In this document: piece by piece, positions 5,423-60,072 of the stretch
How positions within the stretch are numbered: position 1 is the first letter of the stretch
How the letters are laid out: each line of letters opens with the position of its first letter
Sequence record: MN445183.1
Length of the DNA stretch: 64,000 nt
Reading direction: 5' to 3' (one strand)
Translations under genes and position numbers: made by a program
The notes under the pieces: model-generated
Databases searched by the model: none
The model's input: only the letters and a program-made list of their open reading frames with translations
What the model was told of the DNA's origin: nothing

Positions 5423-5450
5423 GCGGGGGCTTAGGCTCCCGCTTATGCCG
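5423..5450 (+). terminator. Hairpin followed by TTATGCCG
   Basis: GCGGGGGC-TTAG-GCTCCCGC then TTATGCCG, just after the stop at 5415. Confidence 0.6.
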
Positions 5451-5469
5451 CTTAACAAACGAGACTCGT

Positions 5470-5655
5470 ATGACAACTGAAAAACTCATTACCGCAGAAG
5501 AAGCCGAAGCCGCTGAACAGCTCATTGCTAACAGTACTGCGTGGGTGGATCTGGACCATGACCATGAAATATGTCTGGACGGCTGGTTCACCATCACTGA
5601 CCTTGAGCACATTATCTTATTGAAACGCTATAAAAACCAGCAACAAGGATCGTAA
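5470..5655 (+). CDS. Small hypothetical protein
   Basis: 61-aa ORF fills the gap; GAG RBS-like upstream. Confidence 0.65.
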   Translation: MTTEKLITAEEAEAAEQLIANSTAWVDLDHDHEICLDGWFTITDLEHIILLKRYKNQQQGS

Positions 5656-5658
5656 ACA

Positions 5659-5982
5659 ATGAGAGATGCCAACTTCGCCGCGAACTCGCAGGTCATGCGT
5701 GAACTGTTATACGAAGTCACCACCGACGAAAACCTCACGGCACAACAACACCGTGACCATAACTATGTCATTAACGAACTGAACAAGCGCTTAAACGAGC
5801 GCTACGGTATCGTGGTGACCACGTTCAACTTAATCCCGCGTGATACTACTCATATCACCGTAGAGGCCTTAGGAGTGGGTTGTGTGCACGCACGTATAAT
5901 CGTCAGTCATTTCGCTAATACACTGTGGGTGGCTAAACGTAAACATTTTTCACTGTGGCAGATTGGATACCAGCCGGCATAA
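5659..5982 (+). CDS. Hypothetical protein
   Basis: 107-aa ORF 3 nt after the previous stop; ends at the convergent hairpin. Confidence 0.7.
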   Translation: MRDANFAANSQVMRELLYEVTTDENLTAQQHRDHNYVINELNKRLNERYGIVVTTFNLIPRDTTHITVEALGVGCVHARIIVSHFANTLWVAKRKHFSLWQIGYQPA

Positions 5983-6046
5983 AGACGTGTACCTTCCTCC
6001 CCGCTATGGGGAGGAAGGACACTGTCTCACTTATGCTTTTTTTTTT
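5975..6046. terminator. Bidirectional terminator between convergent genes
   Basis: CCTTCCTCCCC-GCTAT-GGGGAGGAAGG stem; T-run on the plus side; TTATGCCG on the minus strand (CGGCATAA 5975-5982). Confidence 0.7.
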
Positions 6047-6048
6047 GC

Positions 6049-9000
6049 TTACACGTTACCGAAATCTAAGCCGTCGTCAGAAGCTTTGTCGGCTTCTTTC
6101 TTCTTCTTAGCTTCCTTTTTCTGTGTGCGCTTCGATTTGCGGCTACGGCCTTTAGGTTTGCTATCACCGGTCTCTTCGAAATCGAGATCGTCAGCACCCC
6201 CATTACCTTCACCTTCCTCGAATTCCATGGTACCGTCGTCGGACTGGTCTTCTTCGAAGTCAAGATCACCATCATCTTGTTTGTTCTCTTCGAAGTCCAT
6301 GTCGGAGTTTTCGTCTTGACGTTCCTCTTCAAACGCATTTTCGTCAACTACAGTAGTTGCTTCAACGCCTTCTTCGAGTGCTGACGCGTCCGCCACGTCT
6401 TCGACATCGGTATTCTCCTTACCGGTATTACCTTCTTCAGCGCCTTCGATAGCATCGGAATCATCCTCATTTACAATTGGATTACCGTTTTCATCGACCT
6501 CATTTTCTTCACCCGGAACAGGTTCAATCGGGTTACCTTCATCATCCAGTTCTGGTTCAACCGGTTCGACAGGCTCACCGTTCTCATCCACCTCCGGTGC
6601 CGGGTTATCCTCGCTGGCTTCAGCCGCCAGAGGATCTACCTCAGCTGCTGCGGACATTGGTTCAACACCATCCTCACCCATCAATTCTGCTTCGACCGGA
6701 TCGGCTCCTGCCTCTGTCGTCCCCTCCGGTGTGCCATCTCCGAAATCGGATGCATCGCCACCCTCTCCGGTAATAGCATCTGCGCCGTCAGCAGCGTCAA
6801 TTGGGTTACCGAAATCATCAGTAAGGCCAGTATCGCCGTCACCCCCACCACCGCTACCATCGATCGGATTACCAAACTCGTCAACGCTTCCGTCACCGGT
6901 ATCACCAAACCCATTTTCAGCAGGATTGTTATCGAGATCCCCGTTCTCTTCTAACTTCTCAAAGGACTTGCGTACTTTGTCCTTCATCTTGTTAGAGAGT
7001 TTCAGGTATTCCATAATAGCACCCATGGTCTTCTCATTGTAAGCCACCATAGACGCCAGCAGAGTAATCGATGCGTTAGACTCATCGTCCACTTTGCACA
7101 GATCAGTAATGTCCGCATAACTACCACTGCCCGCCATCCATTCACGCATTTTATGCGCAACCAGGTTCTGACGCCATACTTCAAATTTCGAAGTGTCTGC
7201 ACCTTCACCCAGGATGTACGACAGCACGTCATCGGTAAAGAGATCCTTGAAGGAGTTCTCGTAACGCTGACGCATGGTATCGTACGCGCGGTTCTGTTCG
7301 TCGATGTCGCCTTCCATCGGTTCTGGCAACGTCAGCTCGATCGAGTTAATAAAGTTCACCAGAATAAAGTTGGCCAATGACTGATCATTGTTATCAATTT
7401 CTGGATGATCTTCTTTCAACTCTTTTAACTGCTCTTTACCTTTCTTCGATGTCGGTATCCACAGCTTCTTGTTGTCGTTGATAACGGCATACAAGTCGTT
7501 CATCAGATTACCTGATTTGGCAACGATCTTCTGCACTAGCTCCGATAAGGTTGCACACAACATGTTACGCTGCATCCCGGTAGACTTACGGAACAAGGCG
7601 TTGTTGTTAATGTGTTCAATCGCAAACTGCGTGTTGTTCTGGGATGACAACAGTGCAGGGTCAACACCCCACATGTTCCACAGCATTTCCAACAGGCGGT
7701 CGTTCCATTCAGCGTCCGGCGGTGTAACGTTACGTTTATCGTAGCTGACATCCACATCGATGTCCGGGTATCCAGGGTGACCACTGGTCTTCACAATCAC
7801 ACCAGCTTCATCCATGATGTTGATTACATCACGAGGGTTACGCGCACCGATCAATGAAGACATGGTGCGGTTGCTGTTGAGATGTGTCGTGACGATGGTT
7901 TCCACCGTGGCGTCTGGCTCAGGGTTATCCGGATCCAGGTTAATGCCCAACGTGGTCACGTTAGCGGATGCAGAGATGTTAGCCAGTGTGGTAGAAATCA
8001 CGTTAGCCATTGCCATGGAAGCATACAGACGAGAACGCTCCAGCAGTGAACGACCAATACCAAAGCGGTTGTAATCAAAGGCAAAGTACACCAATGATTC
8101 TTCCGGTAAGAACAGGACTTTGGTTTTCAGGTTACGTAACGTACGCGCAAACATCATCTGTTTGATTTCGTCAGTCATCCCCAGCGCAACTTTCTGAGCA
8201 AAGGTGCCGTTGACAATACGTTGAACCAGATCGCGTTCAATCTCTTCGTTGATCTTACGACGGAATTCCACCATAGAGAACTGATCGGATGAACCGTTCT
8301 TGTACTCTTGGGCCATTTCAATGATACCTTTGGTGCCGTCAATGGCGTTCGCCGTATCCATCTTGTTCTGCTGGATATCCTGGTACTGGTTCTCGTCCTC
8401 TGCGGTAGATAGCGGGTTACCGTCACCGTCCAGTAAAACGTAAGCACCAATACGGGCACGTGGGTTGCCTGGCAGGTGAACCGGCACAACCGATTCAAAC
8501 GGCAGATCGGTCCACAGGACTGCATCCACGTTTTCCATGGTGAGTTCGTCATCACGACGGATTTCAACCAGGTCAGTTTGCTGATAGTCGCGCGTTTTGA
8601 ACAACTGGTTATAAATGCCAACATACTGTTCTTCATTCAGCTTCTTGGCAATAGAGACATCATTACGGCTCCCGTCTTTCTGTTTCGGTTTGCCTTTGTC
8701 ATCTAATGCTTCGATACCGTAACTGCGGGTAGGACCACCGCCACGTAAACCGCGTGGCACGCGTACCTTACGGGACATGGCATTACGGGCCAGCATAAGT
8801 TTCAACTGCGGTAAACGCAGTATCGAGTCGTTATCGGTAACGGTAATGTTGTAACGGCTATCGGCAACCACCGGGTCGGTCATTGGTGGGACTTCACCGC
8901 TGATCAACGATTCCAGTGACGCACGACGCGTACCCTTGGCGATGGTCGCATCGTTATCGCCTAACCAACCACGGTTAATGAACTCACCGTCCTTGTACTC

Positions 9001-9552
9001 TTCTTCCAATGCCTCCATAGAAGCACGGACATGACCGTTAATAACGTTGTCCAGGGCTGAGCTGGATAACAGCGCAATCGCACGCCCACCTTTATAAAAA
9101 AGGATGTCTGCGACGATGTCTTGCAAACGGTCGGTAATTTTATAGTTGTTTTCTACGTAATCCTTAACCTTATCCAACAGCATCGTGTTAAGATCGTTAT
9201 TACGACCTTCGTACGTTTCCGAGGTATAGGACAGGTTGATCGTGGTTAAGTCACGTGGTGACAGGATCGCTGCTTGCAGGATACTGAGTGCTTTAAACGC
9301 ACCGGGTACCGACTCCATCAGTTCGCGGTTAGCGTCGATGGTCGTGCTGGTGATTTTAGAGATGCGTTCCAGCGTAGCCTTAGAGATCTGGTCTTTGTTA
9401 GCAGAGCTGTTAGAAGCGCCCGTCTTGTTTTTTGGTTTGTTTTCTTCGGGCGTTAACATCCCCAGGATCGATTTGGTTACCGGATCCTTATTCATCATAT
9501 TCAGCTTGGGCGTCTTTACACCAGCCACCCCAGTTAATTTTTGATCAGCCAT
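6049..9552 (-). CDS. Probable portal protein (phiKZ gp129-like) with ~300-aa acidic C-terminal extension
   Basis: 1167 aa; FGIGRSLLE resembles the portal G.S.L motif; divergent from the baseplate gene as in phiKZ-like genomes. Confidence 0.6.
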   Translation of the reverse strand: MADQKLTGVAGVKTPKLNMMNKDPVTKSILGMLTPEENKPKNKTGASNSSANKDQISKATLERISKITSTTIDANRELMESVPGAFKALSILQAAILSPRDLTTINLSYTSETYEGRNNDLNTMLLDKVKDYVENNYKITDRLQDIVADILFYKGGRAIALLSSSALDNVINGHVRASMEALEEEYKDGEFINRGWLGDNDATIAKGTRRASLESLISGEVPPMTDPVVADSRYNITVTDNDSILRLPQLKLMLARNAMSRKVRVPRGLRGGGPTRSYGIEALDDKGKPKQKDGSRNDVSIAKKLNEEQYVGIYNQLFKTRDYQQTDLVEIRRDDELTMENVDAVLWTDLPFESVVPVHLPGNPRARIGAYVLLDGDGNPLSTAEDENQYQDIQQNKMDTANAIDGTKGIIEMAQEYKNGSSDQFSMVEFRRKINEEIERDLVQRIVNGTFAQKVALGMTDEIKQMMFARTLRNLKTKVLFLPEESLVYFAFDYNRFGIGRSLLERSRLYASMAMANVISTTLANISASANVTTLGINLDPDNPEPDATVETIVTTHLNSNRTMSSLIGARNPRDVINIMDEAGVIVKTSGHPGYPDIDVDVSYDKRNVTPPDAEWNDRLLEMLWNMWGVDPALLSSQNNTQFAIEHINNNALFRKSTGMQRNMLCATLSELVQKIVAKSGNLMNDLYAVINDNKKLWIPTSKKGKEQLKELKEDHPEIDNNDQSLANFILVNFINSIELTLPEPMEGDIDEQNRAYDTMRQRYENSFKDLFTDDVLSYILGEGADTSKFEVWRQNLVAHKMREWMAGSGSYADITDLCKVDDESNASITLLASMVAYNEKTMGAIMEYLKLSNKMKDKVRKSFEKLEENGDLDNNPAENGFGDTGDGSVDEFGNPIDGSGGGGDGDTGLTDDFGNPIDAADGADAITGEGGDASDFGDGTPEGTTEAGADPVEAELMGEDGVEPMSAAAEVDPLAAEASEDNPAPEVDENGEPVEPVEPELDDEGNPIEPVPGEENEVDENGNPIVNEDDSDAIEGAEEGNTGKENTDVEDVADASALEEGVEATTVVDENAFEEERQDENSDMDFEENKQDDGDLDFEEDQSDDGTMEFEEGEGNGGADDLDFEETGDSKPKGRSRKSKRTQKKEAKKKKEADKASDDGLDFGNV

Positions 9553-9583
9553 TTATAAGGCTCCTTGTTTTCGGGAGATTCCC

Positions 9584-16234: not shown

Positions 16235-16623
16235 AAGACTACGTGGATCCAGTTGTCGAAGCAGACGATCGCGTGCTTGATGCCTTGCAGAACTCGCCTC
16301 ACGGGGTCGTGTCGAAAGCCATGGTTATCTGTGGGGTCTCTGCGGTGCTGACAGCTAACGCGTGTGCCGTGGCTTTCTTCGGTATGTGTATCATCCATGT
16401 CTGGAAGAATGGAACATGGCCGCCGAACGTAGGCTGGGGAATTACGTCTGTGGTGCTTGTCGGGCCTGTTTTAACTGGCTGGCAATTTATGGGGGTGCGT
16501 AAGATCCTCACGTCTATCTTCTCTGAGAATAACTCCTTAGGGTCTATTGTCAAAGAAGTGGTAGCTCGTAAGATGGGATTGCAGACACCTGCACCTAAAG
16601 CAACTGATGACACATCAGCATAA
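16210..16623 (+). CDS. Two-TM membrane protein, holin candidate
   Basis: Two hydrophobic segments, charged C-terminus, converges on the spanin pair. Confidence 0.5.
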   Translation: MENAMSSVKDYVDPVVEADDRVLDALQNSPHGVVSKAMVICGVSAVLTANACAVAFFGMCIIHVWKNGTWPPNVGWGITSVVLVGPVLTGWQFMGVRKILTSIFSENNSLGSIVKEVVARKMGLQTPAPKATDDTSA

Positions 16624-16625
16624 GT

Positions 16626-16666
16626 AGACCCTGGGGCCGCTCACGCAGTCCCAGGGTCTTATGCCG
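16626..16666 (+). terminator. Hairpin followed by TTATGCCG
   Basis: AGACCCTGGG...CCCAGGGTCT stem then TTATGCCG, between convergent genes. Confidence 0.65.
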
Positions 16667-18649: not shown

Positions 18650-18726
18650 AAACCGTCCTTACATGAAATTCAATCATATGTGTTCATTGCCTAATACAAG
18701 CTATAAAATATCTTGGGAGAAATGCC

Positions 18727-27908: not shown

Positions 27909-27964
27909 CGGCATAAGCAAGGCCTGGCCCTTCCCGCAAGGAAGGAGCCAGAGCCTTTATGCCG
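27909..27964. terminator. Bidirectional hairpin flanked by CGGCATAA and TTATGCCG
   Basis: Long imperfect inverted repeat between convergent genes; TTATGCCG follows the stem on both strands. Confidence 0.7.
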
Positions 27965-31693: not shown

Positions 31694-31722
31694 GGGGGAC
31701 TGCTCTGCGGTCCCTTATGCCA
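31694..31722 (+). terminator. Hairpin followed by TTATGCCA
   Basis: GGGGAC...GTCCCT stem then the motif variant. Confidence 0.55.
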
Positions 31723-35940: not shown

Positions 35941-35969
35941 GGCGGGGCTTCGGCCTCGCCCTTATGCCG
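35941..35969 (+). terminator. UUCG hairpin followed by TTATGCCG
   Basis: GGCGGGGC-TTCG-GCCTCGCC-C-TTATGCCG. Confidence 0.65.
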
Positions 35970-40860: not shown

Positions 40861-40907
40861 AAGGATTAGTCCTGCGCCGCGGCGTGGGATTAATCCTTTT
40901 TATGCTG
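40861..40907 (+). terminator. Long hairpin followed by TTTTATGCTG
   Basis: AAGGATTA...TAATCCTT stem, short T-run plus motif variant. Confidence 0.6.
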
Positions 40908-43841: not shown

Positions 43842-43872
43842 GAGAGGAGGGAAACCTCCTCTCTTTATACCA
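43842..43872 (+). terminator. GAAA hairpin followed by TTATACCA (motif variant)
   Basis: GAGAGGAGG-GAAA-CCTCCTCTC perfect 9-bp stem. Confidence 0.6.
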
Positions 43873-46113: not shown

Positions 46114-46122
46114 TAAGGAATT

Positions 46123-46323: not shown

Positions 46324-46325
46324 GA

Positions 46326-46366
46326 CGGCATAAGAGTAGGGTTCATCCCCCTACTCTTTTTTTTTT
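46326..46366. terminator. Bidirectional hairpin: poly-T on plus, TTATGCCG on minus
   Basis: CGGCATAA-GAGTAGGG...CCCTACTC-T-run. Confidence 0.7.
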
Positions 46367-46451
46367 ATTTGTTTTGAGTCCTACATTACTTAAGTGTACC
46401 AATCCAATCCACTTCTTTAAGGGAGCAGCGAGCTGCCCAAAGGAAACCACA

Positions 46452-47147: not shown

Positions 47148-47167
47148 TTTAAAAAAAGGAACTTCAC

Positions 47168-49343: not shown

Positions 49344-49344
49344 C

Positions 49345-49830: not shown

Positions 49831-50705
49831 TGTTCCTAAAACGTTCGTACTACTTACCGGATTACAAACATCATGTGCAGTTGCCAAAACTGTTCCTCCG
49901 TATTCGTTCTGTTGCCATTAAGTTTAAAGGCGCTCCAGAAGCGATATACATCACGCCTGATGAGAGCCACAGTATCGAAATCAGGAACATGGTGCGAATG
50001 GGTGGCACGGTAGGTTGCGATGTTAACTTGGCCATTGGCACCGTATCGTTGGCCTGGCATATTTCCGCAGGTTGGCGTAACGGCGTTTTTCAACTGTGGG
50101 TCCATGGGTTAGCGGGTGGAGTTATTCCTAAACCTGATGACGAAAGACTGGAACTCGTGTCCTGGGAAATCTACGAATACAGCCTGTACGCGGAACCCAA
50201 CAATGATCGCAAGTTTCCGTACGTCCATGACAAGCCCATTGATAACTACGACACACGTGATGAAGTCGTGCTTAATCAGAATAGGTACGGGTTTGAAATC
50301 ATGGCAAGGCTTAAAGCCCAGTACGATTACGACACGAAGACCACGGTGGACTTAGCCACATTGCAACCGAACGATGTGGTGACAACAGTTATTCTGCGTC
50401 GCCATAGACAGGTGTTGGGTTATCTGTCGTTCAAAGACGACGTCAACGCGTTTGCTATCGCGACTGAACTGCGTCGTCTGGTACCGGCTGAAGACTGGTA
50501 CGACTGTGAAGTGGAGATGATGGATATTGCTGAGTTCCTGGTGAATAGTCGTCGCTGGGATCTTTCCATTCCACGGCACAAACGTACGGCGCGGTTCAGT
50601 AGTGAATCGACACATTGTACACTCGGTAGATCCGTGTTCAGTTGTGAGGATGGCGAGCCGAAGTTTAAACTCTTCAAAGAGGACCCTACTGACGGTATTG
50701 TATAG
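49830..50705 (+). CDS. Hypothetical protein
   Basis: 291 aa, TAATG-coupled. Confidence 0.7.
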   Translation: MFLKRSYYLPDYKHHVQLPKLFLRIRSVAIKFKGAPEAIYITPDESHSIEIRNMVRMGGTVGCDVNLAIGTVSLAWHISAGWRNGVFQLWVHGLAGGVIPKPDDERLELVSWEIYEYSLYAEPNNDRKFPYVHDKPIDNYDTRDEVVLNQNRYGFEIMARLKAQYDYDTKTTVDLATLQPNDVVTTVILRRHRQVLGYLSFKDDVNAFAIATELRRLVPAEDWYDCEVEMMDIAEFLVNSRRWDLSIPRHKRTARFSSESTHCTLGRSVFSCEDGEPKFKLFKEDPTDGIV

Positions 50706-50892
50706 TAGGTAGTGTACTCTGTGACGATCAATCGTGAAAGTCACACTGGAAGGAGGTGATCAGGGTGTATCATTTGCCCGTATCTCCCACGGGGAAGGGT
50801 TAGACTCCGGTTGCGACCGCATGGTCGTATGTAGGGTTACCAAAGTCGGACGGCTCCGGTAGCTCTGCGTTACGCTGTTCTATACAACCTAC
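50694..50892 (+). ncRNA. Candidate structured RNA / sORF-containing element
   Basis: ~190-nt intergenic stretch with several hairpins, end-to-end pairing and AAGGAGGTGATC. Confidence 0.35.
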
Positions 50893-50924
50893 GGCTGGGG
50901 GTAAAACCCCAGCCTCTTATGCCG
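50893..50924 (+). terminator. Hairpin followed by TTATGCCG
   Basis: GGCTGGGG-GTAAAA-CCCCAGCC-TC-TTATGCCG. Confidence 0.65.
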
Positions 50925-50941
50925 CTTAAAAGGAAACTCGT

Positions 50942-51574
50942 ATGAAAATCATTCAACAACAAACCCTGGACGCCATTCTTTCTAGCCTTACGAATGAGAC
51001 CAAAGTAACCGATCAGCTGTTGCCGTGGAACTGGTTGGGTGATGACATCATCCAGTCATTAAACGCCGCACACGGGTTTAACTGGCCCCGTACGCCAATG
51101 GCGGGGTATTGCCTGCCTTTCGCCAGTCCGATCTCGGTGGCAACCAGTAAAGAAGTGTATTGGCTGTACTTCATTGCCAACTACCGTTACTACGACAACA
51201 CCGCAGTTGATTTGGCAGGCCTTGATTACAATTTGTTCATTGAGGGTGAAACCGAAATCATGAATATTGCATTAACTGGCTGGCAAACAGGTCGCCTTCA
51301 TGGGGAAACCAAAGCACATGGCGGGGTGACGACCGGGATCATCGATGAGAGTCGCGAAGTTATTTTCAAACGCTATCAGGCCATTCCTTTCCTGATGGAA
51401 AAGTTCAGTCACATGCTGATGACTCGTGAATTACTGCACGGGGTTCCGTATCTGGCGTGTTTCGCCACACACCACTACAACGAGATTTATCGTAACCATC
51501 CGTATCCTAATGTGGTGCGCGAACTGGAACTTCCTACTAACCGTCTTTTGAAAGATCTCGTCTGGGGTAAATAA
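50942..51574 (+). CDS. Hypothetical protein
   Basis: 210 aa, AAGGA RBS. Confidence 0.7.
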   Translation: MKIIQQQTLDAILSSLTNETKVTDQLLPWNWLGDDIIQSLNAAHGFNWPRTPMAGYCLPFASPISVATSKEVYWLYFIANYRYYDNTAVDLAGLDYNLFIEGETEIMNIALTGWQTGRLHGETKAHGGVTTGIIDESREVIFKRYQAIPFLMEKFSHMLMTRELLHGVPYLACFATHHYNEIYRNHPYPNVVRELELPTNRLLKDLVWGK

Positions 51575-51987
51575 TGACACAGGCAATTGCGTTTCTCATT
51601 AAGGATGCTGACGAACCAGAGATGTCGGGCATCTTGATCCAAACCGAACGTGAAATGGATTTCGACGACATCAAGCGTGACGTTGAGCGCATCGTTAACT
51701 ACGAAGAGCTGCAAGACAAGTTCTACTGCAACATGGCCAGTGATGAAACCACCCTCACCTTTGTTGAAGTGTTGGGCGTGCCGATGCCGGTCTTTGTGTA
51801 TCGTGACGTGAAGATGCGCGGTTGGGCACAGGCTGCGGCGGATGTGATCGCTAAGAATGCCTGTGGCTACTCGGTAACTCTGTTCACGCCAGAAGCCCTA
51901 GCCATCGCAGTAAAGAACACCATGGGTATCATGGGTATCGCTGACCTTTCAGGCCCGTTACGTGGGTTGCCTTACAAGGAGTTTTAA
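51574..51987 (+). CDS. Hypothetical protein
   Basis: 137 aa, TAATG-coupled. Confidence 0.7.
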   Translation: MTQAIAFLIKDADEPEMSGILIQTEREMDFDDIKRDVERIVNYEELQDKFYCNMASDETTLTFVEVLGVPMPVFVYRDVKMRGWAQAAADVIAKNACGYSVTLFTPEALAIAVKNTMGIMGIADLSGPLRGLPYKEF

Positions 51988-52314
51988 ATGACGGTCGAAG
52001 ATCGTGAAAATGTAAAAACTGCCGTTGAGTGGATTCGTAAACTGTTTGCACTTAATTGCATTCCCAAGAATCCTAAGCGCGATTTGTCTGATGAAGGTAT
52101 TCATCGTTTAATGGATACCAACGTTAAACAGGTTGTGGTAATGGTGGAAGAGTACGTGAACCGGGTGGGGCTTGAGTTCGATACCCGGTTTGCTACAGAA
52201 GAGCTGTGCAAGACCTATGGGATTCGCATTAGCTTTGTCCCAACCGAACAGGACTGTTGTGGCTGGGTAATGGCCAAGATGGTGACTGAGAAGGGCAGTT
52301 TCCATTACGGTTAA
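51988..52314 (+). CDS. Small hypothetical protein (T.KG...G C-terminal family)
   Basis: 108 aa, AAGGAG RBS. Confidence 0.7.
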   Translation: MTVEDRENVKTAVEWIRKLFALNCIPKNPKRDLSDEGIHRLMDTNVKQVVVMVEEYVNRVGLEFDTRFATEELCKTYGIRISFVPTEQDCCGWVMAKMVTEKGSFHYG

Positions 52315-52402
52315 AATATGTTCAGTTGTACATAACTACACCCATAATTTGAAAGGCAGGTGTGCCGATCAAACTGTTCCATTTTTCCAGTAAGGATACA
52401 TA

Positions 52403-53065
52403 ATGAGACATGTTTTACTTGGGGACCTCGAAACCGGTAGTAAGGAAAAGAATGCTGCGGTATTTAGCGTGGCGTTTCTGCTCTTTGATATCGATGATGT
52501 TGGCTCCGTTGAGCGAGCAGCTGAAGCGTTTGTTAAAGGCGAGCCGGCTGATGATTATCGCTACTTAAGATTGCACGTAGGCGATCAGTGGCTAGACGGC
52601 CGCTGCCTTGACCTGGATACTCAGGAGTGGTGGCAGCAGGATCGTCTTAAGAAACCACGTGAGGCACAAAAAGGCGGAACTGGGGATTTCAAATCCGCTT
52701 TGCAGGAAGTTGCTAAACTGGTTGACGAATTGACCAAACGTCATCAGACCATCTACGGAAAAGACAGCAAGATCGTCGTGTACTTCCGTGATCGTCAGTT
52801 CGATGACAACATTCTTCAACACGCGTCTGAACAGTACGGTGTAAAACTCAATTACATCTTTAATCAGCGCCGGGACGTAAGGACCTATATCGATACGAAA
52901 TTAGACACCACCATCGGGTATATCCCTGACTTTAAACCGTTCCCTGATCTGCCTCGTCATCACGCGATGACCGATGTGCTTCGGGATGCTGCTTCAATGA
53001 TTGAAGCGAAACGTCGTTCTTTAAGTAACACACGCAGTGTAGTATCTGAAGATAAGTCGCCGTAA
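52403..53065 (+). CDS. DEDD-family 3'-5' exonuclease (Rv2179c-like exoribonuclease)
   Basis: GDLET, FDDNIL, RDVRT, HHAMTD motifs. Confidence 0.8.
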   Translation: MRHVLLGDLETGSKEKNAAVFSVAFLLFDIDDVGSVERAAEAFVKGEPADDYRYLRLHVGDQWLDGRCLDLDTQEWWQQDRLKKPREAQKGGTGDFKSALQEVAKLVDELTKRHQTIYGKDSKIVVYFRDRQFDDNILQHASEQYGVKLNYIFNQRRDVRTYIDTKLDTTIGYIPDFKPFPDLPRHHAMTDVLRDAASMIEAKRRSLSNTRSVVSEDKSP

Positions 53066-53081
53066 TCAGGTGGCTCTTTTA

Positions 53082-53212
53082 TGCCCGTTGGATCCGTCAT
53101 CTAACTGGGCAGTTTATAGTAGTGCGGAAGCGCGTGTGCACGGAACAGGCGGGAAAGTCAAGACGAGGGACCAGTCGATGGCGAAAGCTCCAATAGCAAG
53201 CCACTATTAGGA
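53082..53212 (+). ncRNA. Candidate structured RNA / leader with GNRA-capped hairpins
   Basis: Four or more stems in ~130 nt of intergenic DNA. Confidence 0.3.
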
Positions 53213-53244
53213 GTATGAGTAACTTTAGATTCTGGAGGATCAAC

Positions 53245-53691
53245 ATGACTAACCTTAACGTTGCGAACTACTGGGCTGAAGTAAACAACCACGCCGCTAT
53301 CGGTACTTTGCGAGCGAATGATGTGAACCAGGTATTTCACCCTTTTACATTGCAAGTGATTTTACACGGGTTGGGCATCAACGATATCAAGCAACCAGGC
53401 GTGACGTACACGGGACGCTGTCTGGAGTTACCAAACATCAACACCTATCAATCTCCTATCAAGACGTTCATTTGTCGCTTTGACTTTCAAGGCACACGAA
53501 TGATTAAGTCTCTGGTGGTGACTGTGCGTATGGATCTGACCACGGGAATGGTGACATCCATGCCGTTGGTGGGTTGGGACATTCGCGGCACGTCTATTGC
53601 GGAAGCATTGGATCTGCGGGCAGGCATGGAGGTTTATGGGTCGTACGGTAACATCAAAGCATGTGCTGACTGGCTGATGGCCGCGGCATAA
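53245..53691 (+). CDS. Hypothetical protein
   Basis: GGAGG RBS before ATG 53245. Confidence 0.7.
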   Translation: MTNLNVANYWAEVNNHAAIGTLRANDVNQVFHPFTLQVILHGLGINDIKQPGVTYTGRCLELPNINTYQSPIKTFICRFDFQGTRMIKSLVVTVRMDLTTGMVTSMPLVGWDIRGTSIAEALDLRAGMEVYGSYGNIKACADWLMAAA

Positions 53692-53745
53692 AGACCAGGT
53701 GGCGCCTCTGGGGTGTTACCCCGTGGCGCTGTACCTCTTTACTTT
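53684..53745. terminator. Hairpin with TTATGCCG on the minus strand
   Basis: CGGCATAA then an imperfect GGCGCC..GGGGT-GTT-ACCCC..GGCGCT stem. Confidence 0.5.
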
Positions 53746-53747
53746 TA

Positions 53748-54203
53748 ATGGGAATCACGCTAATGCTTAAGATCTTCAATGAGTGCTTGATCGCAATTAA
53801 CAAATGCATTAAAGGTTTACTCGAAGACGGGCTGTTGAGTGTTAATCAAGAGTTCGGCCAAGTTATTGCACCTTGGCAACGCAAAGCATTAAACGGCCTG
53901 GTTGGCGATGATGCAGTCGTGGTATCTATCACAGGCTGCCATCTTCCGCAGGTCGATATTCAAGGCATGCCCACGGATTCAATGGTTGTTGGAGTCCAGT
54001 ACCAAAAGGACAACCGCTTCCATTGGACGTCGGCGCTTGTCGTTTGCAATTCGGCCACTCAATGGTCAAACGTGTCGGTGTTAGCTTCTGAATCAGTTCA
54101 GGCTGGTTTAGACGAAGACAACAACGTGATTGGTCTTGCGTATCAGCACATCGGTAAAGCCGGTGAGCTCGCCGCATTAGCATTACCTGCACGAGCAGCA
54201 TAA
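53748..54203 (+). CDS. Hypothetical protein
   Basis: 151-aa ORF filling the gap before thyA. Confidence 0.65.
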   Translation: MGITLMLKIFNECLIAINKCIKGLLEDGLLSVNQEFGQVIAPWQRKALNGLVGDDAVVVSITGCHLPQVDIQGMPTDSMVVGVQYQKDNRFHWTSALVVCNSATQWSNVSVLASESVQAGLDEDNNVIGLAYQHIGKAGELAALALPARAA

Positions 54204-54267
54204 AACTATAAATAGACTATAAACATCAATTCGTTGTTTTACTCAAAGAAAATCAGGATATAAGAAG

Positions 54268-55419
54268 ATGGATAATTATTTGCTGCTTGGCCATCAAATT
54301 ATGCGTGAAGGTCGTAAGCGCGGTGATCGCACGGGAACAGGCACTAGAAGTATTCGCAGTGCTAAACTCATCTTTGATATGCGTAAAGGCTTCCCTCTGG
54401 TTACTACCAAGAAGGTCAACCTGGAGTATGTCTTCCGTGAGCTGAAGTGGATCTTACTAGGTCGTTCAGATGTACAGTACCTGGAAGAACACGGCTGTGG
54501 TTTTATCTGGCGCGATTGGTCGCTTAGCGAGCCGGTAATGGAAGAAATCCGTTATGCCGACTGGCAACGTCTCGAAGTGCTCGAACGCAACTATCCAGAA
54601 GCATACGCGGCATGGGTAGAAGAAGGGTATGCAAAACGTCCGATTGCCGAAGGTCATGCCTTTATGGACAAGCATGGGGTTCCCACTCACTGGGAGCGCA
54701 TTAAAATCCCAGCGGGTGAAACGAATGCACCTTATGGCCCGGCGTGGCGTAAGTGGAAAGGTCGTGATGGTAAAGAAATTGATCAGATCCAGTATCTGCT
54801 CGATACTTTGCGCACGAACCCATCTAGTCGTCGTATCCTGTTGTCTGCTTGGGATCCGGCTAACTTACCTGACGAGTCCATTAGTCCTCAGGAAAACATT
54901 AAGCAAGGACGTCCGTGTCTTACTCCGTGTCACTGGGCGATCGAAATGTACACCGACGAGCTTACACTCGATGAGCGTGTGAACTGGTTAGTGGAGCGTA
55001 ATCCGTTTGCCTGGGATAAGTGGGTAGATAATGACGAGGCAAATGCTGAAGGCGCGCTGGAAGTATATTTAGACATGCACGGTGTGCCAAAGCACTTCCT
55101 GGACCTGAAGTGGCACCAGCGTTCAGTCGATACCATGATTGGGCTACCGTATAACATCGCCAGTTACGGATTGTTGCTGCTGATGTTTGCACGTACGCTG
55201 AACATGGTTCCGCGTGAGTTAGAGCTGGATGGCACGAACGTCCACATGTATTCAAATCACGTGGAAGGCTTTGTGCAGCAGTTTAGCCGCACGCCGCGCG
55301 AGCTACCAACAGTAGAACTCATTAACAAGCACGATCGGCTGGAAGACTATGAATGGGGGGATATCGCCCTGTCGAACTACAACCCTCACCCGTTCATCAA
55401 GTACGATGTATCCGTTTAA
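54268..55419 (+). CDS. thyA: Thymidylate synthase with two insertions
   Basis: DRTGTGT, FPLVTTKKV, PYG..WR.W, SRRILLSAWDP, catalytic PCH, QRSVD..GLPYNIASY. Confidence 0.95.
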   Translation: MDNYLLLGHQIMREGRKRGDRTGTGTRSIRSAKLIFDMRKGFPLVTTKKVNLEYVFRELKWILLGRSDVQYLEEHGCGFIWRDWSLSEPVMEEIRYADWQRLEVLERNYPEAYAAWVEEGYAKRPIAEGHAFMDKHGVPTHWERIKIPAGETNAPYGPAWRKWKGRDGKEIDQIQYLLDTLRTNPSSRRILLSAWDPANLPDESISPQENIKQGRPCLTPCHWAIEMYTDELTLDERVNWLVERNPFAWDKWVDNDEANAEGALEVYLDMHGVPKHFLDLKWHQRSVDTMIGLPYNIASYGLLLLMFARTLNMVPRELELDGTNVHMYSNHVEGFVQQFSRTPRELPTVELINKHDRLEDYEWGDIALSNYNPHPFIKYDVSV

Positions 55420-55424
55420 ATAAT

Positions 55425-55462
55425 GAGAAGGGTGTCTGTCCGGCACCCTTACTCTTATGCCG
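55425..55462 (+). terminator. Hairpin followed by TTATGCCG
   Basis: GAGAAGGGTGTC...GGCACCCTTACTC then the motif. Confidence 0.65.
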
Positions 55463-55485
55463 TTTAAAAGAATAAAGGAACCCGT

Positions 55486-56160
55486 ATGACTGATAACATC
55501 CAACACCAAATTAACATGTTTCCATATAGGCTAAGTCGGCTGTTGCGTAAGAAACCCGTATACAAAGATGGTGTCTATGCTGGGACTACCTATCCGACTA
55601 TAGAGGAAACGGTTAAGTACATTAACAGCACCGATGTACTGGGCGCGATTATCTTTACTGATGAACAACGTGAACTGTTGGCTAAGTACCGTGACCGGGT
55701 TAATGTGACCGAGATCATGTCAGACGCATTAACCAAAGAATTGAAGAACATTCACTACCACATTCTTTCTGCGCAATCCGAACAGGATCGCCTCGCTCGT
55801 AACCCTGCCCGTATCCTGAAACCCGAAGTGGGTGATCAGTGGAAAGCCCGTTTTGGTTCTTACGGTGATCGCGATTTCATTGTGATGCAGGTGTTTGGCG
55901 AAGACGACATTGTGGTGTGGGGCAATCACCTAATGGAAGGCAATGACCCTAACACCGGGTATTTACGTGTTAGCCGCCAATGGATCGTTGGTCATACGCA
56001 TGCAGACTGTGGCCAGGAATGTCGACTGACTGATCTTGATCCGCGGATGTGGGGGATGGACTGCCATCCGATGCCAAAAGACAGTGAGGATTACAAATCA
56101 CTCATTGAACACAACACAACGTATGACTACAGCAGCGTAGAATCGATTTTAAGAGGTTAA
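55486..56160 (+). CDS. Hypothetical protein (tandem paralog A)
   Basis: 224 aa, AAGGA RBS. Confidence 0.7.
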   Translation: MTDNIQHQINMFPYRLSRLLRKKPVYKDGVYAGTTYPTIEETVKYINSTDVLGAIIFTDEQRELLAKYRDRVNVTEIMSDALTKELKNIHYHILSAQSEQDRLARNPARILKPEVGDQWKARFGSYGDRDFIVMQVFGEDDIVVWGNHLMEGNDPNTGYLRVSRQWIVGHTHADCGQECRLTDLDPRMWGMDCHPMPKDSEDYKSLIEHNTTYDYSSVESILRG

Positions 56161-56161
56161 C

Positions 56162-56767
56162 ATGTGTGCAAGTGATCTGATGGTAGAAGATGTATTGGGC
56201 CCGCGTGTGACTGAACTCACGCCGGATAAAGACGGTTGTGCGGTTATCCCGGTTAAGGTGGACGCTATAACCTTGACACTGCTCAACGTCATTAACGACA
56301 AGAACGTGTCACTTGGCAAAGACCCCATTGATTTAAATGCGACGATCAATGAGGCGTTGGCAAGTAAGGTACGTGATTGGGCAAGGGTCAACATGACGCG
56401 TGGGGAATCACGTCAGTGGTTGAATGAAGATGGGCTACGTAATCCGCAGGTAGGGGATTCGTGGTGCGAACGTCCTGGTTCGATTGACGCAATGATTGTT
56501 TGTGTGTTTTCGCCTGACGATTTCATTATCCACACCTATGTCAGTTCAGGTGGATTAATGCCCAGTCGTTATCGCTGTAATCGTGCGTGGTTAAAAGAAC
56601 TGGTGTTGTATTCCACCGATCCGACACAGCCATTGAATTTTAAAGCTGACCGCTTTTTATGCAGTAAAGACGGGGACCGCTACAAAGAGCTGACCAACCC
56701 CGAGATCATCAAAGGTGAAATAGCGTATGCAACAGACATACGCCATCTTGATCCTAATGCTTTATAA
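56162..56767 (+). CDS. Hypothetical protein (tandem paralog B)
   Basis: 201 aa, GAGG RBS. Confidence 0.7.
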   Translation: MCASDLMVEDVLGPRVTELTPDKDGCAVIPVKVDAITLTLLNVINDKNVSLGKDPIDLNATINEALASKVRDWARVNMTRGESRQWLNEDGLRNPQVGDSWCERPGSIDAMIVCVFSPDDFIIHTYVSSGGLMPSRYRCNRAWLKELVLYSTDPTQPLNFKADRFLCSKDGDRYKELTNPEIIKGEIAYATDIRHLDPNAL

Positions 56768-56792
56768 AAATAGAATCCTATGAACAGGAGTA

Positions 56793-56826
56793 GGGGCGGG
56801 GCTAATAACCCCGCTCTTTTTTTTTT
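56793..56826 (+). terminator. Intrinsic terminator
   Basis: GGGGCGGGG...CCCCGCTCT followed by a T-run. Confidence 0.75.
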
Positions 56827-56851
56827 ACTACACAACTAGGTTACTGTACTT

Positions 56852-57169
56852 ATGGTACCTGTCTCTATTTATAGCGACATTTTGTCGCTTATCCAGTTTC
56901 TTGAATCGCATGATGGTTTGCCCTGTTCCGCCTTACGTATTACGGATAAAGCAAATCGTCGCCACTTCCCAGATGATGTCCAGGAGGCCATTTTAGAATT
57001 GCAATACCTGCTCAATGAGTATTTTAATGATCAAGCCAAAGTGGAATCGTTATTAAAATATTGCGCTGAGTATGCCTGTGTTCTGACTTATACACAGGGC
57101 AGCGAAGACACGTGGGGCTTATCAACATTCTTCCTTAATCTAACGAAGGGAAAGATCTGGTTTGGCTGA
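56852..57169 (+). CDS. Small hypothetical protein (T.KG...G C-terminal family)
   Basis: 105 aa. Confidence 0.65.
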   Translation: MVPVSIYSDILSLIQFLESHDGLPCSALRITDKANRRHFPDDVQEAILELQYLLNEYFNDQAKVESLLKYCAEYACVLTYTQGSEDTWGLSTFFLNLTKGKIWFG

Positions 57170-57177
57170 CGAATGAT

Positions 57178-57849
57178 ATGTCTTTGTTACCTGAGGAATG
57201 TCTCGTGAGTCGATCAATGACCTGGTCTAAGCTTGAAATGGTTTGGCTACTGGTCGCGTCCTTGGTGTTATCGGCCACAGCGTGTTACTACGCGGATTGG
57301 TTCTACTATGTAGCAACCCTTTCGTTAGTACTACACTTCATTCTTTTGGGGCGGGGGTATTACCTGGGGTTCTTATTTGGCGGGTTCGCGGTCGCCTTTT
57401 ATGGATTCTACTGCCACCGTCTGGGAATGGCCTTTCACTTAGGGGCGCAAGGACTGTATTTGTTAGTTAACATAGTAGGTGCTTTTATCTGGCGGTATCA
57501 ATACGCTTTTCACAAACCACAATCCTTACAGTCATTACCGTACTGGTATGACATCGCACTCACGCTGATCCTCATTGTAGGTATGGGCGCTGTGTCGTAT
57601 AACGTCATTGCCACCGGCGATGTAGTAGAATCGTTACGGCCGTTCACCATCATTGGTGCCTGCGTCGGAACGCTGATGATTATATTCGGATACCACGAAC
57701 GTTGGTGGGTTTGGATTGAAGTGTGTTCGGTGGCCACTATTTTGTGGCTGTTGTACTACTTCCAAACTGGTCACGGGTTACCCGGAATAGTCGCCTGGTT
57801 GGTTGCTTTGTTTAGCGCTGTTATTTGTCACTACACGCATCGAAAGTAA
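57178..57849 (+). CDS. pnuC: PnuC-like nicotinamide riboside transporter
   Basis: About 7 TM segments; G.Y.GFLFG...Y, QGLYL..N..G...W and ERWWVWI motifs. Confidence 0.7.
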   Translation: MSLLPEECLVSRSMTWSKLEMVWLLVASLVLSATACYYADWFYYVATLSLVLHFILLGRGYYLGFLFGGFAVAFYGFYCHRLGMAFHLGAQGLYLLVNIVGAFIWRYQYAFHKPQSLQSLPYWYDIALTLILIVGMGAVSYNVIATGDVVESLRPFTIIGACVGTLMIIFGYHERWWVWIEVCSVATILWLLYYFQTGHGLPGIVAWLVALFSAVICHYTHRK

Positions 57850-57856
57850 TGTATAC

Positions 57857-57901
57857 GACGGCGGCTTTCTCCTGCGGGAGGAGGTCCCGTCTTTTATGCC
57901 G
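57857..57901 (+). terminator. Hairpin followed by TTTTATGCCG
   Basis: GACGG...CTCC-TGCG-GGAG...CCGTC then the motif. Confidence 0.6.
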
Positions 57902-57910
57902 CCTAATTCA

Positions 57911-57934
57911 TTTTAGACCTATATTACCTAAGTG
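57911..57934 (+). promoter_or_regulatory. Early-type phage promoter motif
   Basis: TTTTAGAC-CTATATTAC-CTAA-GTG, containing an exact TATATTAC. Confidence 0.7.
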
Positions 57935-57963
57935 TATCTAAACCGTAACCCGTGAGAAAAATA

Positions 57964-58260
57964 ATGAACGAAGCCCTTATTAAGAAAGAGCGTCTGGGCG
58001 CCATGGAACGTCTAGAGCGTCAGCTTGATGAACTCTATGCCAAGAAACTTACTCTGGATCGCAATCTCAGCACAGCCCAACAAGACATGGCACTCACCAT
58101 GAGAAGGAAAGGCACTTCCGTCGACAGATTCCGTGAGATGCAAGATGCCCTTGCAGCCGCGACTCAAAACGCTAATGAGATCCATCAGTTGGAGCGTCAA
58201 CTGAAAAGAGCCCGTGAAACCTTTGAACGGGATTATCCTAATTTTGGAAGAGGAGGCTAA
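57964..58260 (+). CDS. Small coiled-coil protein
   Basis: Heptad-rich ~98 aa downstream of the promoter motif. Confidence 0.7.
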   Translation: MNEALIKKERLGAMERLERQLDELYAKKLTLDRNLSTAQQDMALTMRRKGTSVDRFREMQDALAAATQNANEIHQLERQLKRARETFERDYPNFGRGG

Positions 58261-58677
58261 ATGCAACAACCACTGATATTGTTTCGCTGTGGATGGAGTG
58301 CCACGCCGGTTAACGAAGAGAACTATTGTCATCGTCACCCACCTGGACCGAACATCATCCAGTACTGGTGCACGGGTGGTGGGTTTGACTACGACAACTT
58401 TGTAGGGATTGTCGCGGCCCCGTCCGAAGAAGAACTCATGTCGATCATCAGTCAGGATTTCCTGAATGTTCAAGATCGTGGGTTTACCCGCCTGTACGAC
58501 CCCAGTGACATTACTGATCGTTTTCAGCTACCTATAAACGAATGGGGGTATCAGCGCCTAGCGTATCTACTCAGCACAGGACAGCTGTATACACGGCCTA
58601 TCGTGGGGCATTACGAGCCAGAACCCATGGGGCCGTCCTGGTGGTGCACAACGAACATTGAGTTGTTCGACGTCTAA
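58261..58677 (+). CDS. Hypothetical protein
   Basis: 138 aa, GGAGG RBS. Confidence 0.7.
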   Translation: MQQPLILFRCGWSATPVNEENYCHRHPPGPNIIQYWCTGGGFDYDNFVGIVAAPSEEELMSIISQDFLNVQDRGFTRLYDPSDITDRFQLPINEWGYQRLAYLLSTGQLYTRPIVGHYEPEPMGPSWWCTTNIELFDV

Positions 58678-58683
58678 ACTCAC

Positions 58684-58711
58684 AAGAGGCCTTCGGGTCT
58701 CTTTTTTTTTT
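58684..58711 (+). terminator. Intrinsic terminator
   Basis: AAGAGGCC-TTCG-GGTCTCTT plus T-run. Confidence 0.8.
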
Positions 58712-58731
58712 CTATTTTTAAGTTCCAGATT

Positions 58732-58756
58732 TTTTCAGACCTATATGACCAGTGTG
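58732..58756 (+). promoter_or_regulatory. Early-type phage promoter motif
   Basis: TTTTCAGAC-CTATATGAC-CAGT-GTG. Confidence 0.65.
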
Positions 58757-58807
58757 AATGAGAGCAATAAACAATCCTTTCAATTACCTTAACTTGTGGA
58801 GTTTATC

Positions 58808-59047
58808 ATGATCAACCCAATTCGCATGGTCAAAGCAGCTATCGCCAAACGTGAAGAAGTAAAAGCAGCACGTGAAGCTAAATTGAATGCAGCCCGCGAA
58901 TCGGCTGCTCAGTTCTCTCGTCTGGAAGTTTCCGTACGTCGCATGACTCATGGTCAACTGGCTCACGCATTGTCTAACGGTTCACTGCAAGCTGCACGTG
59001 CTCAGTTCGACATCGACATGGCAACTATCCGTAACCTGTCTAAATAA
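58808..59047 (+). CDS. Small basic Ala-rich early protein
   Basis: GGAG RBS before ATG 58808; strongly biased codons (GCA/GCT, CGT, AAA). Confidence 0.75.
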   Translation: MINPIRMVKAAIAKREEVKAAREAKLNAARESAAQFSRLEVSVRRMTHGQLAHALSNGSLQAARAQFDIDMATIRNLSK

Positions 59048-59091
59048 ATTAATCCGTAATAAACATACCCTAAACCTGTGAGGATCTAAAG

Positions 59092-59310
59092 ATGGAAAAC
59101 GTAAACCTGAACAACGAAGCGCAAGTAGAAACCGTAGCCGTAGCAACCGCAACTTCTAAAATGAAGAAAGCCGCATTCTACGTTGGTGTTGGTATGGCTG
59201 CCGGTGCAATCGGTTACCATCTCTACAAAGTGTGCAAGAAAGTGAAAACAGTTGTAGACGTTGTGGCTGAAGAAGAGCCAGCGGCAACTGAAGAAACCCC
59301 GGCTGCATAA
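59092..59310 (+). CDS. Small single-TM early protein
   Basis: GAGG RBS; AAFYVGVGMAAGAIGYHLY TM segment; acidic C-terminal tail. Confidence 0.75.
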   Translation: MENVNLNNEAQVETVAVATATSKMKKAAFYVGVGMAAGAIGYHLYKVCKKVKTVVDVVAEEEPAATEETPAA

Positions 59311-59318
59311 GCCGTATA

Positions 59319-59349
59319 AATGAGGATCCATGTGGGTCCTCATTTTTTT
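59319..59349 (+). terminator. Intrinsic terminator
   Basis: AATGAGGATCC-ATGT-GGGTCCTCATT plus T-run. Confidence 0.75.
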
Positions 59350-59381
59350 ACCTTGACCTGTCAGCGCCTGAGGAGGCCACC

Positions 59382-59825
59382 ATGCATCATTACAAATTTC
59401 CTGAAATCACCCGTACTGACATTTACGGTGAAGAAGAAGACTTTGGCAGACTGGCTAAAGTAAGCATCGCAGGGGTTGACGTATACATTGCGTCACATCG
59501 TGTGGAACCTCGCTTTGGTAAGTTGGGTGAAGTTGAAGAAGTGCCGGAGTTCTTGACGGATCTGCACATCACCTGCTGTGAAACCGGTGGTAACGGTAAC
59601 AGCTATGTGTATATCACAGACAAAGCGCACATCTGGCCGGTATGCCAATACCTGTCTAAGCAGCGGGATAAGTTCTCTGACATCTTTGTGAGTGGTAGCC
59701 GTTGCTCGGTCCTGATGTCATTTAAGGATGGCGTGGGTATGAGAACACATAACCCTCATGAACAGCTTATGACCGAAGCTGAACGTGAGTATTATCGCTT
59801 ACCGGCAGCAGGCGCCGAAGCGTAA
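59382..59825 (+). CDS. Hypothetical protein
   Basis: 147 aa, GAGGAGG RBS. Confidence 0.7.
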   Translation: MHHYKFPEITRTDIYGEEEDFGRLAKVSIAGVDVYIASHRVEPRFGKLGEVEEVPEFLTDLHITCCETGGNGNSYVYITDKAHIWPVCQYLSKQRDKFSDIFVSGSRCSVLMSFKDGVGMRTHNPHEQLMTEAEREYYRLPAAGAEA

Positions 59826-59828
59826 TAA

Positions 59829-59859
59829 AGACGGGGCGGTTGCCCCTTCTTTTTTTTTT
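59829..59859 (+). terminator. Intrinsic terminator
   Basis: GGGGC-GGTT-GCCCC plus a long T-run. Confidence 0.7.
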
Positions 59860-59877
59860 GTTATTGAGCTGTATTTA

Positions 59878-59902
59878 TTTTCAGATCTACATTACTGCCG
59901 TG
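59878..59902 (+). promoter_or_regulatory. Early-type phage promoter motif
   Basis: TTTTCAGAT-CTACATTAC-TGCC-GTG. Confidence 0.7.
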
Positions 59903-59947
59903 ATAAGCAGTATTAACTTTCTATCCATAACTCGTAAGGAGTAAATC

Positions 59948-60013
59948 ATGGTTATTAATAACGATACCAATCAAGGTAATTCAATCAGCTGTTTCTTTCT
60001 GGACAAGCCGTAA
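59948..60013 (+). CDS. Candidate 21-aa early micropeptide MVINNDTNQGNSISCFFLDKP
   Basis: TAAGGAG RBS 7 nt upstream, first ORF after a promoter motif; below the ORF-track cutoff. Confidence 0.45.
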   Translation: MVINNDTNQGNSISCFFLDKP

Positions 60014-60072
60014 AGCAGTGTATCGTATAAGACCAAACCTGCGTTTATGCCGATTTTAATAAGAGAGATAAA

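Follow-up and report, generated by a model that had tools for sequence, protein, structure and literature searches.

What is the octamer TTATGCCG, which recurs directly after GC-rich hairpins in the first 64,000 bases of Salmonella jumbo phage vB_SalM_SA002 (hereafter SA002; MN445183.1, 288,012 bp)? Bases 1-64000 are referred to here as the window, and genome-wide counts cover all 288,012 bp. An earlier note on this DNA had read hairpin plus octamer as a second, poly-T-free class of terminator or 3'-end processing signal, specific for a phage polymerase or factor and possibly doubling as a restart site at its TATG. We consider it about 80% probable that these elements would act as hairpin-dependent, intrinsic-type terminators, of a kind conserved in phiKZ-like jumbo phages.

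The identity of the phage sets the frame for this reading. The annotation of SA002 lists several fragments of RNA polymerase (RNAP) beta/beta' subunits, and tblastn searches with phiKZ proteins returned matches to gp55, a subunit of the non-virion polymerase (30% identity, E = 2e-55), and to the tubulin PhuZ (E = 1e-29); the same type of search with phiKZ gp54 gave no chimallin match in SA002. The major capsid protein has its kin in the Erwinia phages pEa_SNUABM_48/37 and the Agricanvirus group (RAY, Ea35-70), and more distant kin in Goslar, 201phi2-1, PhiPA3 and other phiKZ-like phages. On the strength of the RNAP fragments, the capsid kinship and the gp55 and PhuZ homologues, we regard SA002 as a jumbo phage of the phiKZ-like type that encodes its own transcription machinery, in agreement with the earlier guess of a phiKZ-like phage with multisubunit RNAPs.

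The octamer occurs 14 times on the two strands of the window, against 1.85 +/- 1.34 expected, and none of 100 shuffles reached 14. Copies lie at 544, 5443, 16659, 27957, 35962, 50917, 54552, 55455, 57894 and 60045 on the plus strand and at 5975, 27909, 46326 and 53684 on the minus strand; the earlier note had placed every one of them correctly, and the four variants that it named (31715, 40900, 43865 and 53079) are all present. Folding of the 45 nt upstream of each copy revealed a stable hairpin (-16.7 to -32.2 kcal/mol) before TTAT at 11 of the 12 copies outside coding sequences (CDS), with a gap between stem and TTAT of 0-3 nt in ten of them and of about 4 nt at 53684. The two copies within CDS, 544 and 54552, had been set aside as chance matches, and no hairpin adjoins either. 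Most of the other copies are intergenic, as had been claimed, except that the minus-strand copies at 5975 and 53684 share bases with the final codons of genes on the plus strand. No Rfam family matched in the window. The individual sites are as follows, all terminators being predicted ones.

5423..5450, plus strand: terminator; hairpin 5423-5442, then TTATGCCG 5443-5450 (-27 kcal/mol, z -5.6); gene 2791-5415 stops 28 nt upstream and gene 5470 has its ATG 27 nt downstream; syntenic in pEa_SNUABM_48 and RAY.
5975..6046, both strands: bidirectional terminator between convergent genes 5659-5982 (plus) and 6049-9552 (minus) (-32.2 kcal/mol, z -7.3); on the minus strand, hairpin 6027-5983 then TTATGCCG 5982-5975, the complement of which contains the TAA stop of the plus-strand gene; on the plus strand, the common hairpin, then TTATGC 6031-6036 and a T-run from 6037.
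16616..16666, both strands: bidirectional terminator between convergent genes 16222-16623 (plus) and 16669-17013 (minus) (-31.5 kcal/mol, z -7.8); TTATGCCG 16659-16666 (plus) and TTATGCTG 16623-16616 (minus); GCATAA, with the stop codon of the plus-strand gene, pairs with TTATGC into a longer stem; syntenic in pEa_SNUABM_48 and RAY.
27909..27964, both strands: bidirectional terminator between convergent genes 24454-27906 (plus) and 27966-28928 (minus) (-28.3 and -29.1 kcal/mol); a single hairpin flanked by exact TTATGCCG on both strands; syntenic in pEa_SNUABM_48 and RAY.
31694..31722, plus strand: hairpin and variant TTATGCCA (31715-31722) past gene 29199-31688 (-17.8 kcal/mol).
35941..35969, plus strand: terminator; hairpin 35941-35960, C, TTATGCCG 35962-35969 (-16.8 kcal/mol); follows the transglycosylase gene and closes a unit begun at the early-type promoter motif 33510; syntenic.
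40861..40907, plus strand: terminator; hairpin 40861-40898, TTATGCTG 40900-40907 (-26.2 kcal/mol, z -5.7); an early-type promoter motif comes next at 40923.
43842..43872, plus strand: terminator; hairpin 43842-43863, variant TTATACCA 43865-43872 (-18.8 kcal/mol).
46326..46368, both strands: two-strand terminator; hairpin 46334-46358 (-16.7 kcal/mol, z -6.0); plus-strand T10 as canonical terminator of gene 46126-46323; minus-strand TTATGCCG 46333-46326 on the antisense side.
50893..50924, plus strand: terminator; hairpin 50893-50914, TC, TTATGCCG 50917-50924 (-19.3 kcal/mol, z -3.1); the ATG of gene 50942 is 25 nt on.
53055..53086, plus strand: moderate hairpin and variant TTATGCCC 53079-53086 after gene 52403-53065 (-13.1 kcal/mol, z -1.5).
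53684..53736, minus strand: terminator on the antisense side of a same-direction array; hairpin 53736-53697, TTATGCCG 53691-53684 (-23.1 kcal/mol, z -2.5); the motif complement contains the TAA stop of plus-strand gene 53245-53691.
55420..55462, plus strand: terminator; hairpin, then TTATGCCG 55455-55462 (-18.9 kcal/mol, z -4.1); after the thymidylate synthase gene and 31 nt before the ATG of gene 55486.
57857..57901, plus strand: terminator; hairpin 57857-57891, TTATGCCG 57894-57901 (-28 kcal/mol, z -5.1); an early-type promoter motif comes next at 57919.
60045..60052, plus strand: exact motif with a weak stem (-8.7 kcal/mol, z -0.2), 28 nt before the ATG of gene 60073.
544..551, plus strand: chance copy in a gene, no hairpin adjoining.
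54552..54559, plus strand: chance copy in the thymidylate synthase gene, no terminator-type hairpin adjoining.
37781-37814, 46332-46368, 56792-56828, 58684-58713, 59318-59351 and 59833-59860, plus strand: T-run terminators.

Two of these sites had been singled out earlier. The site at 46326 does carry poly-T on one strand and the motif on the other, both sharing hairpin 46334-46358, and the stem at 60045 is as weak as it had been described (z -0.17). The latter site, which lies 32 nt past the unannotated open reading frame (ORF) 59948-60013, is possibly a decayed terminator. This plus-strand ORF of 21 codons has a good ribosome-binding site (AAGGAG, 6 nt before its ATG) and is preceded by an early-type word at 59887.

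The coupling of octamer and hairpin extends to the whole genome, where hairpins were called by sliding RNAfold at -12 kcal/mol or better within 3 nt of TTAT. Such a hairpin accompanies 40 of the 48 exact genomic copies of TTATGCCG, and three further copies have a strong hairpin 4-7 nt away; at all other TTAT sites the proportion is 5.4% (odds ratio 88, p = 1e-40). Homopolymers and stem fragments aside, TTATGCC is the top-enriched 7-mer of intergenic DNA. When a hairpin followed by TTAT was used as the sole anchor, 97 non-coding sites yielded the consensus TTAT-G-C-C-G-R-T-T, with frequencies at positions 5-8 of 0.69 (G), 0.69 (C), 0.64 (C) and 0.66 (G). The four bases read exactly GCCG at 38 of these sites, and the stem ends 0-1 nt before TTAT at 69. 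By contrast, hairpin-TTAT sites inside genes (n = 62) display no base preference at positions 5-8. The genome-wide count by hairpin distance that the earlier note had proposed, together with the survey of related jumbo phages described below, thus bears out its association of motif and hairpin.

The orientation of the elements relative to genes carries the functional argument. We took the 63 sites with a hairpin, TTAT and at least three of four matches to GCCG, and placed them among the annotated minus-strand genes and the longest plus-strand ORFs. A same-strand gene lies upstream of the motif in 55 of the 63, with the motif typically 24-70 nt past its stop, while a same-strand gene lies downstream in only 27 and is lacking in 36. 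The motif is directed into the 3' end of a convergent gene at 28 sites, where only a terminator role fits (from several such copies the earlier note had favoured termination or 3'-end processing over a promoter); a promoter-only context was found once (171181). Where a hairpin lies between convergent genes, both its flanks usually bear the motif or a near variant, and the stem is then extended by pairing of the 5' GCATAA with the 3' TTATGC. At convergent sites, and at sites antisense to gene arrays, the stop codon of the neighbouring gene (TTA on the motif strand) very often stands 1-2 nt past the octamer, giving TTATGCCG-N-TTA; in a few genes (5982, 53691, 71594, 145024 and 226401) the stop codon is the TAA within CGGCATAA.

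A signal of this type has already been described, contrary to what the earlier note had supposed. ONT-cappable-seq of phiKZ mapped 133 termination sites, and 61 intrinsic terminators share 5'-BCCYCCCCHWWDGGGRRGGBYTTATKYYGT-3' at mapped RNA 3' ends; six regions terminate in both directions, and antisense terminators also occur (Putzeys et al. 2024, microLife, PMC10914365). In 201phi2-1, the main terminator motif (59 sites) strongly resembles that of phiKZ, a second motif extends the stem, and 15 terminators are bidirectional; eight terminators were active in a reporter trap in uninfected P. chlororaphis, at levels like those of lambda T0 (Poppeliers et al. 2024, PMC11512511). The octamer TTATGCCG matches TTATKYYG exactly, and the SA002 element belongs to this signal type, with a sharper consensus. 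A literature search for the literal motif gave a PCR primer in the genome note of phage Miami as its sole match; other searches found no paper on SA002 signals and no mechanistic study of termination by phiKZ-type phage polymerases.

The element is also conserved by position. SA002, pEa_SNUABM_48 and RAY have retained hairpin and TTATGCC at four syntenic positions, namely after gene 3, after the transglycosylase gene and at the junctions of convergent genes at 16.6 and 27.9 kb, and the RAY stems at these positions differ in sequence throughout from those of SA002. A survey of the first 50 kb of each related genome found 8 exact copies of TTATGCCG after hairpins in RAY and 6 in pEa_SNUABM_48; hairpins are followed by TTATG(C/T)(C/T)GT in 201phi2-1, by TTATGTTG, TTATGCTG, TTATACCG and similar forms in phiKZ, and by a looser, weaker form of the motif in Goslar. 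In the metagenomic collection IMG/VR, CCTCCC-loop-GGGAGG followed within 2 nt by TTATGCCG was found in 61 stretches, 41 of them on contigs >200 kb; with T8 in place of TTATGCCG, the same stem was found at least 118 times, on contigs of ordinary size, and among the 80 listed matches 1 lies on a contig >200 kb. The TTATGCCG box is a hallmark of the phiKZ-like lineage across Pseudomonas, Erwinia, Salmonella and Escherichia hosts.

The claim of a second terminator class needs a change of rank. A separate class does exist, yet "second" understates it: by like criteria the genome holds 12 sites with a hairpin and at least six T, against 63 of the TTAT type (about 5 to 1), so that the hairpin-TTATGCCG type would be the majority terminator class of SA002. 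A U-tract of about 7-9 nt does not directly follow the stem of these elements, where only UUAU stands, and a T-run further downstream occurs in a few motif copies (5975, 46326, 240308 and 280923). Poly-T terminators number about 12-14 genome-wide and lie on the plus strand in nearly all cases. Of the poly-T sites, seven come first after an early-type promoter word, compared with 10 among the 63 sites of the TTAT type, and the two types may be unevenly divided between early and late units. Composite two-way terminators were observed at 5983-6046 in the window and at 94664-94720, 107608-107662, 182999-183058, 229102-229160, 240262-240330 and 280880-280945 elsewhere in the genome; one strand reads hairpin, TTATGC(YG) and, after 0-5 nt, a run of 7-12 T, and the other has an A-run and GCATAA ahead of the hairpin and TTATGCCG behind it.

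In the mechanism that we propose by homology, a GC-rich stem-loop would form in the nascent RNA, UUAUGCCG within 0-3 nt would take the place of the long U-tract, and the transcript would end there. At convergent gene ends, a motif on each side of one hairpin would let the element act both ways, and GCAUAA, often including the stop codon of the upstream gene, would pair with UUAUGC into a longer stem. Work on bacterial polymerases suggests how the box may function: its conserved 8 nt approximate the length of the RNA:DNA hybrid from stem base to release point, and UUAU would supply weak rU:dA pairs for the hairpin to melt. Multisubunit polymerases obey an elemental pause rule of Y(-1)/G(+1). 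The step CC|G (YYG in phiKZ), about 7 nt past the stem, could provide such a pause and replace the pausing of the distal U-tract.

Which polymerase would respond is a related question. The element closes units begun at the early-type promoter word and also late structural genes, and both phage polymerases therefore probably respond to it. The reporter data from uninfected cells show that a bacterial polymerase can respond as well, at least to the 201phi2-1 elements (PMC11512511). Of the earlier reading, the terminator-type signal is upheld by orientation, synteny and the match to phiKZ and 201phi2-1, but its restriction to a phage polymerase is not, given that the eight 201phi2-1 terminators, which bear the terminator motifs of that phage, act in uninfected Pseudomonas, where the host polymerase is the only one present.

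Several points weigh against this interpretation. The termination role in SA002 is argued from position, orientation and homology, and the 3' ends found by ONT-cappable-seq in the relatives could partly be processed ends (PMC10914365, PMC11512511). Seven sites lie antisense to same-direction gene arrays, with no annotated gene there that requires a terminator; we take these to be two-way terminators too, because the sense strand has its own T-run or TTATGC. The G at position 5 is conserved as strongly as positions 6-8, which the pause model leaves unexplained. SPFM17 (Seoulvirus), an SPN3US-like relative with its own (split-gene) polymerases, displays over its first 50 kb strong hairpins followed by T-rich tails only, without the TTATKYYG motif; Seoulvirus may have lost or replaced the box.

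The strongest competing thought concerns initiation. The TATG within TTATGCCG could be a start for the non-virion polymerase, with +1 at G as in phiKZ, and the hairpin could be the terminator of the preceding gene or an aid to DNA opening. Six sites (5443, 31715, 35962, 50917, 55455 and 60045) sit 25-34 nt before a start codon, a spacing that leaves no room for another promoter, so that these genes need read-through or a start at the box; the site at 171181, moreover, lies in a divergent, promoter-only region. We nevertheless consider a late promoter or restart function unlikely. A same-strand gene follows only 27 of the 63 sites and 28 face a convergent 3' end, a constant hairpin spacing of 0-3 nt is unexpected for an independent promoter, and the variants TTATACCG and TTATAACG disrupt TATG, whereas phiKZ requires every position of it. 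The 21 divergent intergenic regions need promoters and not terminators, and the absence of a hairpin-motif unit from 20 of them, all save 171181, accordingly counts against a promoter role. These regions hold 35 TATG words against about 12 expected at the genome-wide rate, and 17 of the 35 are followed by T and 4 by C, whereas over the whole genome the commonest next base is C; TATGT is thus likely to be the late-promoter word for structural genes of SA002. TATG-rich examples were observed at 18650-18726 in the window and at 105159-105258, 183907-183994 and 232072-232165 in the genome. The non-virion polymerase of phiKZ reads TATG on the non-template strand (Yakunina et al. 2015, PMC4666361; de Martin Garrido et al. 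2026, PMC12809450), and the phiKZ late promoter p119L reads TATGT with an AT-rich upstream region and no hairpin. The late promoter and the SA002 box hence share TATG, but the promoter is hairpin-independent and the box is not oriented like one; given the differences in next base and hairpin, TATGT and TTATGC appear to be different signals that share four bases. The restart role attributed earlier to TATG is not borne out, with no same-strand gene downstream of 36 of the 63 sites and with promoter-only regions that carry TATGT in place of the element. A link between the two words is conceivable, if rather unlikely: TATG in the box might be read during elongation by the non-template-strand pocket of the beta-like subunit, as at late promoters, making it a stop and start word; the polymerase would pause and release past the hairpin and, where a gene follows within about 30 nt, might restart at G while still on the DNA.

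RNA processing would place the same hairpins in another role, with a host or phage endoribonuclease cutting in or after UUAUGCCG, the hairpin shielding the new 3' end and the polymerase reading through. Conservation does exceed what a U-tract needs, suggesting recognition by some factor, and the long-read 3' ends in phiKZ and 201phi2-1 do not fully distinguish terminated from processed transcripts. We know of no candidate nuclease, and the arrangement of a hairpin before a U-rich start, seen at gene ends and facing both ways, is that of a terminator. With ARNold calling the phiKZ elements intrinsic terminators (PMC10914365) and the 201phi2-1 terminators cutting downstream reporter output in uninfected cells much as lambda T0 does (PMC11512511), processing is quite improbable as the main function. 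It is least probable, to the point of being scarcely credible, that the element is a DNA-level repeat (a REP- or MITE-like mobile or protein-bound palindrome) or a by-product of a GCA-TAA stop context. Some hairpins are similar (27916 and 169593; 145026 and 248551) and several genes end in (CG)GCATAA; most stems, however, are unrelated in sequence and have only the 8-nt box in common, RAY and SA002 have different stems at the four syntenic positions, and placement tracks gene 3' ends strand-specifically. Stop-codon context alone was rejected, since the motif DNA is non-coding on both strands in 26 same-direction cases and the stop codon usually lies 1-2 nt outside the octamer.

The early-type promoter word that recurs beside these elements is CTAYATYAC-N4-GTG, found 6 times in the window against 1.09 expected (33510, 40923, 46381, 57919, 58741 and 59887, all plus strand). 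The genome holds 21 exact copies, all on the plus strand, and five of the six window copies lie just downstream of a terminator. The word resembles the early (virion polymerase) promoters of phiKZ-related phages, which have an AT-rich TATATTA core and a start about 6 nt downstream; the AR9 form is ...TATATTAT-(6N)-G. Divergent gene pairs only 24-38 nt apart, with neither this word nor TATG between them, were noted at 9553-9583 in the window and at 127521-127558 and 283968-283991 in the genome, which implies promoters inside the neighbouring genes or very small ones. A sigma-70 promoter was also considered as an explanation of the motif and rejected; sigma-70-like matches are not enriched (22 vs 28.5 expected in 44001-64000), which fits host-polymerase-independent transcription.

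If the terminator interpretation is right, a GC hairpin followed by TTATKYYG offers a simple rule for marking the ends of transcription units in enterobacterial phiKZ-like phages, and, with 41 of 61 IMG/VR matches on contigs >200 kb, a metagenome marker of phiKZ-like phages. The sharp octamer of SA002 and RAY would be a cleaner entry than the degenerate phiKZ motif to U-tract-less termination by minimal, sigma-embedded polymerases, and compact bidirectional terminators are useful engineering parts.

Compared with known systems, the SA002 element is closest to the phiKZ motif: both have a GC-rich stem-loop (often CCYCCCC/GGGRRGG) directly before YTTATKYYGT, stand after genes, work two ways at convergent pairs with some copies antisense, and occur in phages with their own multisubunit RNAPs. 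The box is much sharper in SA002 (exactly GCCG at 38 of 97 sites), whereas phiKZ mixes G/T and C/T; the SA002 stems are more varied and its host is enterobacterial. The second motif of 201phi2-1 (motif B) extends the stem as the GCATAA-TTATGC pairing does in SA002. The 201phi2-1 signals come with reporter traps and RNA mapping, and those of SA002 are predicted. Like canonical Rho-independent terminators, the SA002 elements place a GC-rich hairpin with U-rich first bases (UUAU) at gene ends, and in some copies the extended stem is followed by a true T-run; they differ in the conserved, G/C-rich GCCG that stands in place of a U-tract of 7-9 nt. The class II termination signal of T7 RNA polymerase is a hairpin-independent sequence word read by a single-subunit polymerase. 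It differs in sequence from the SA002 box and serves as an analogy only, in that there, too, a conserved word helps to stop a phage polymerase.

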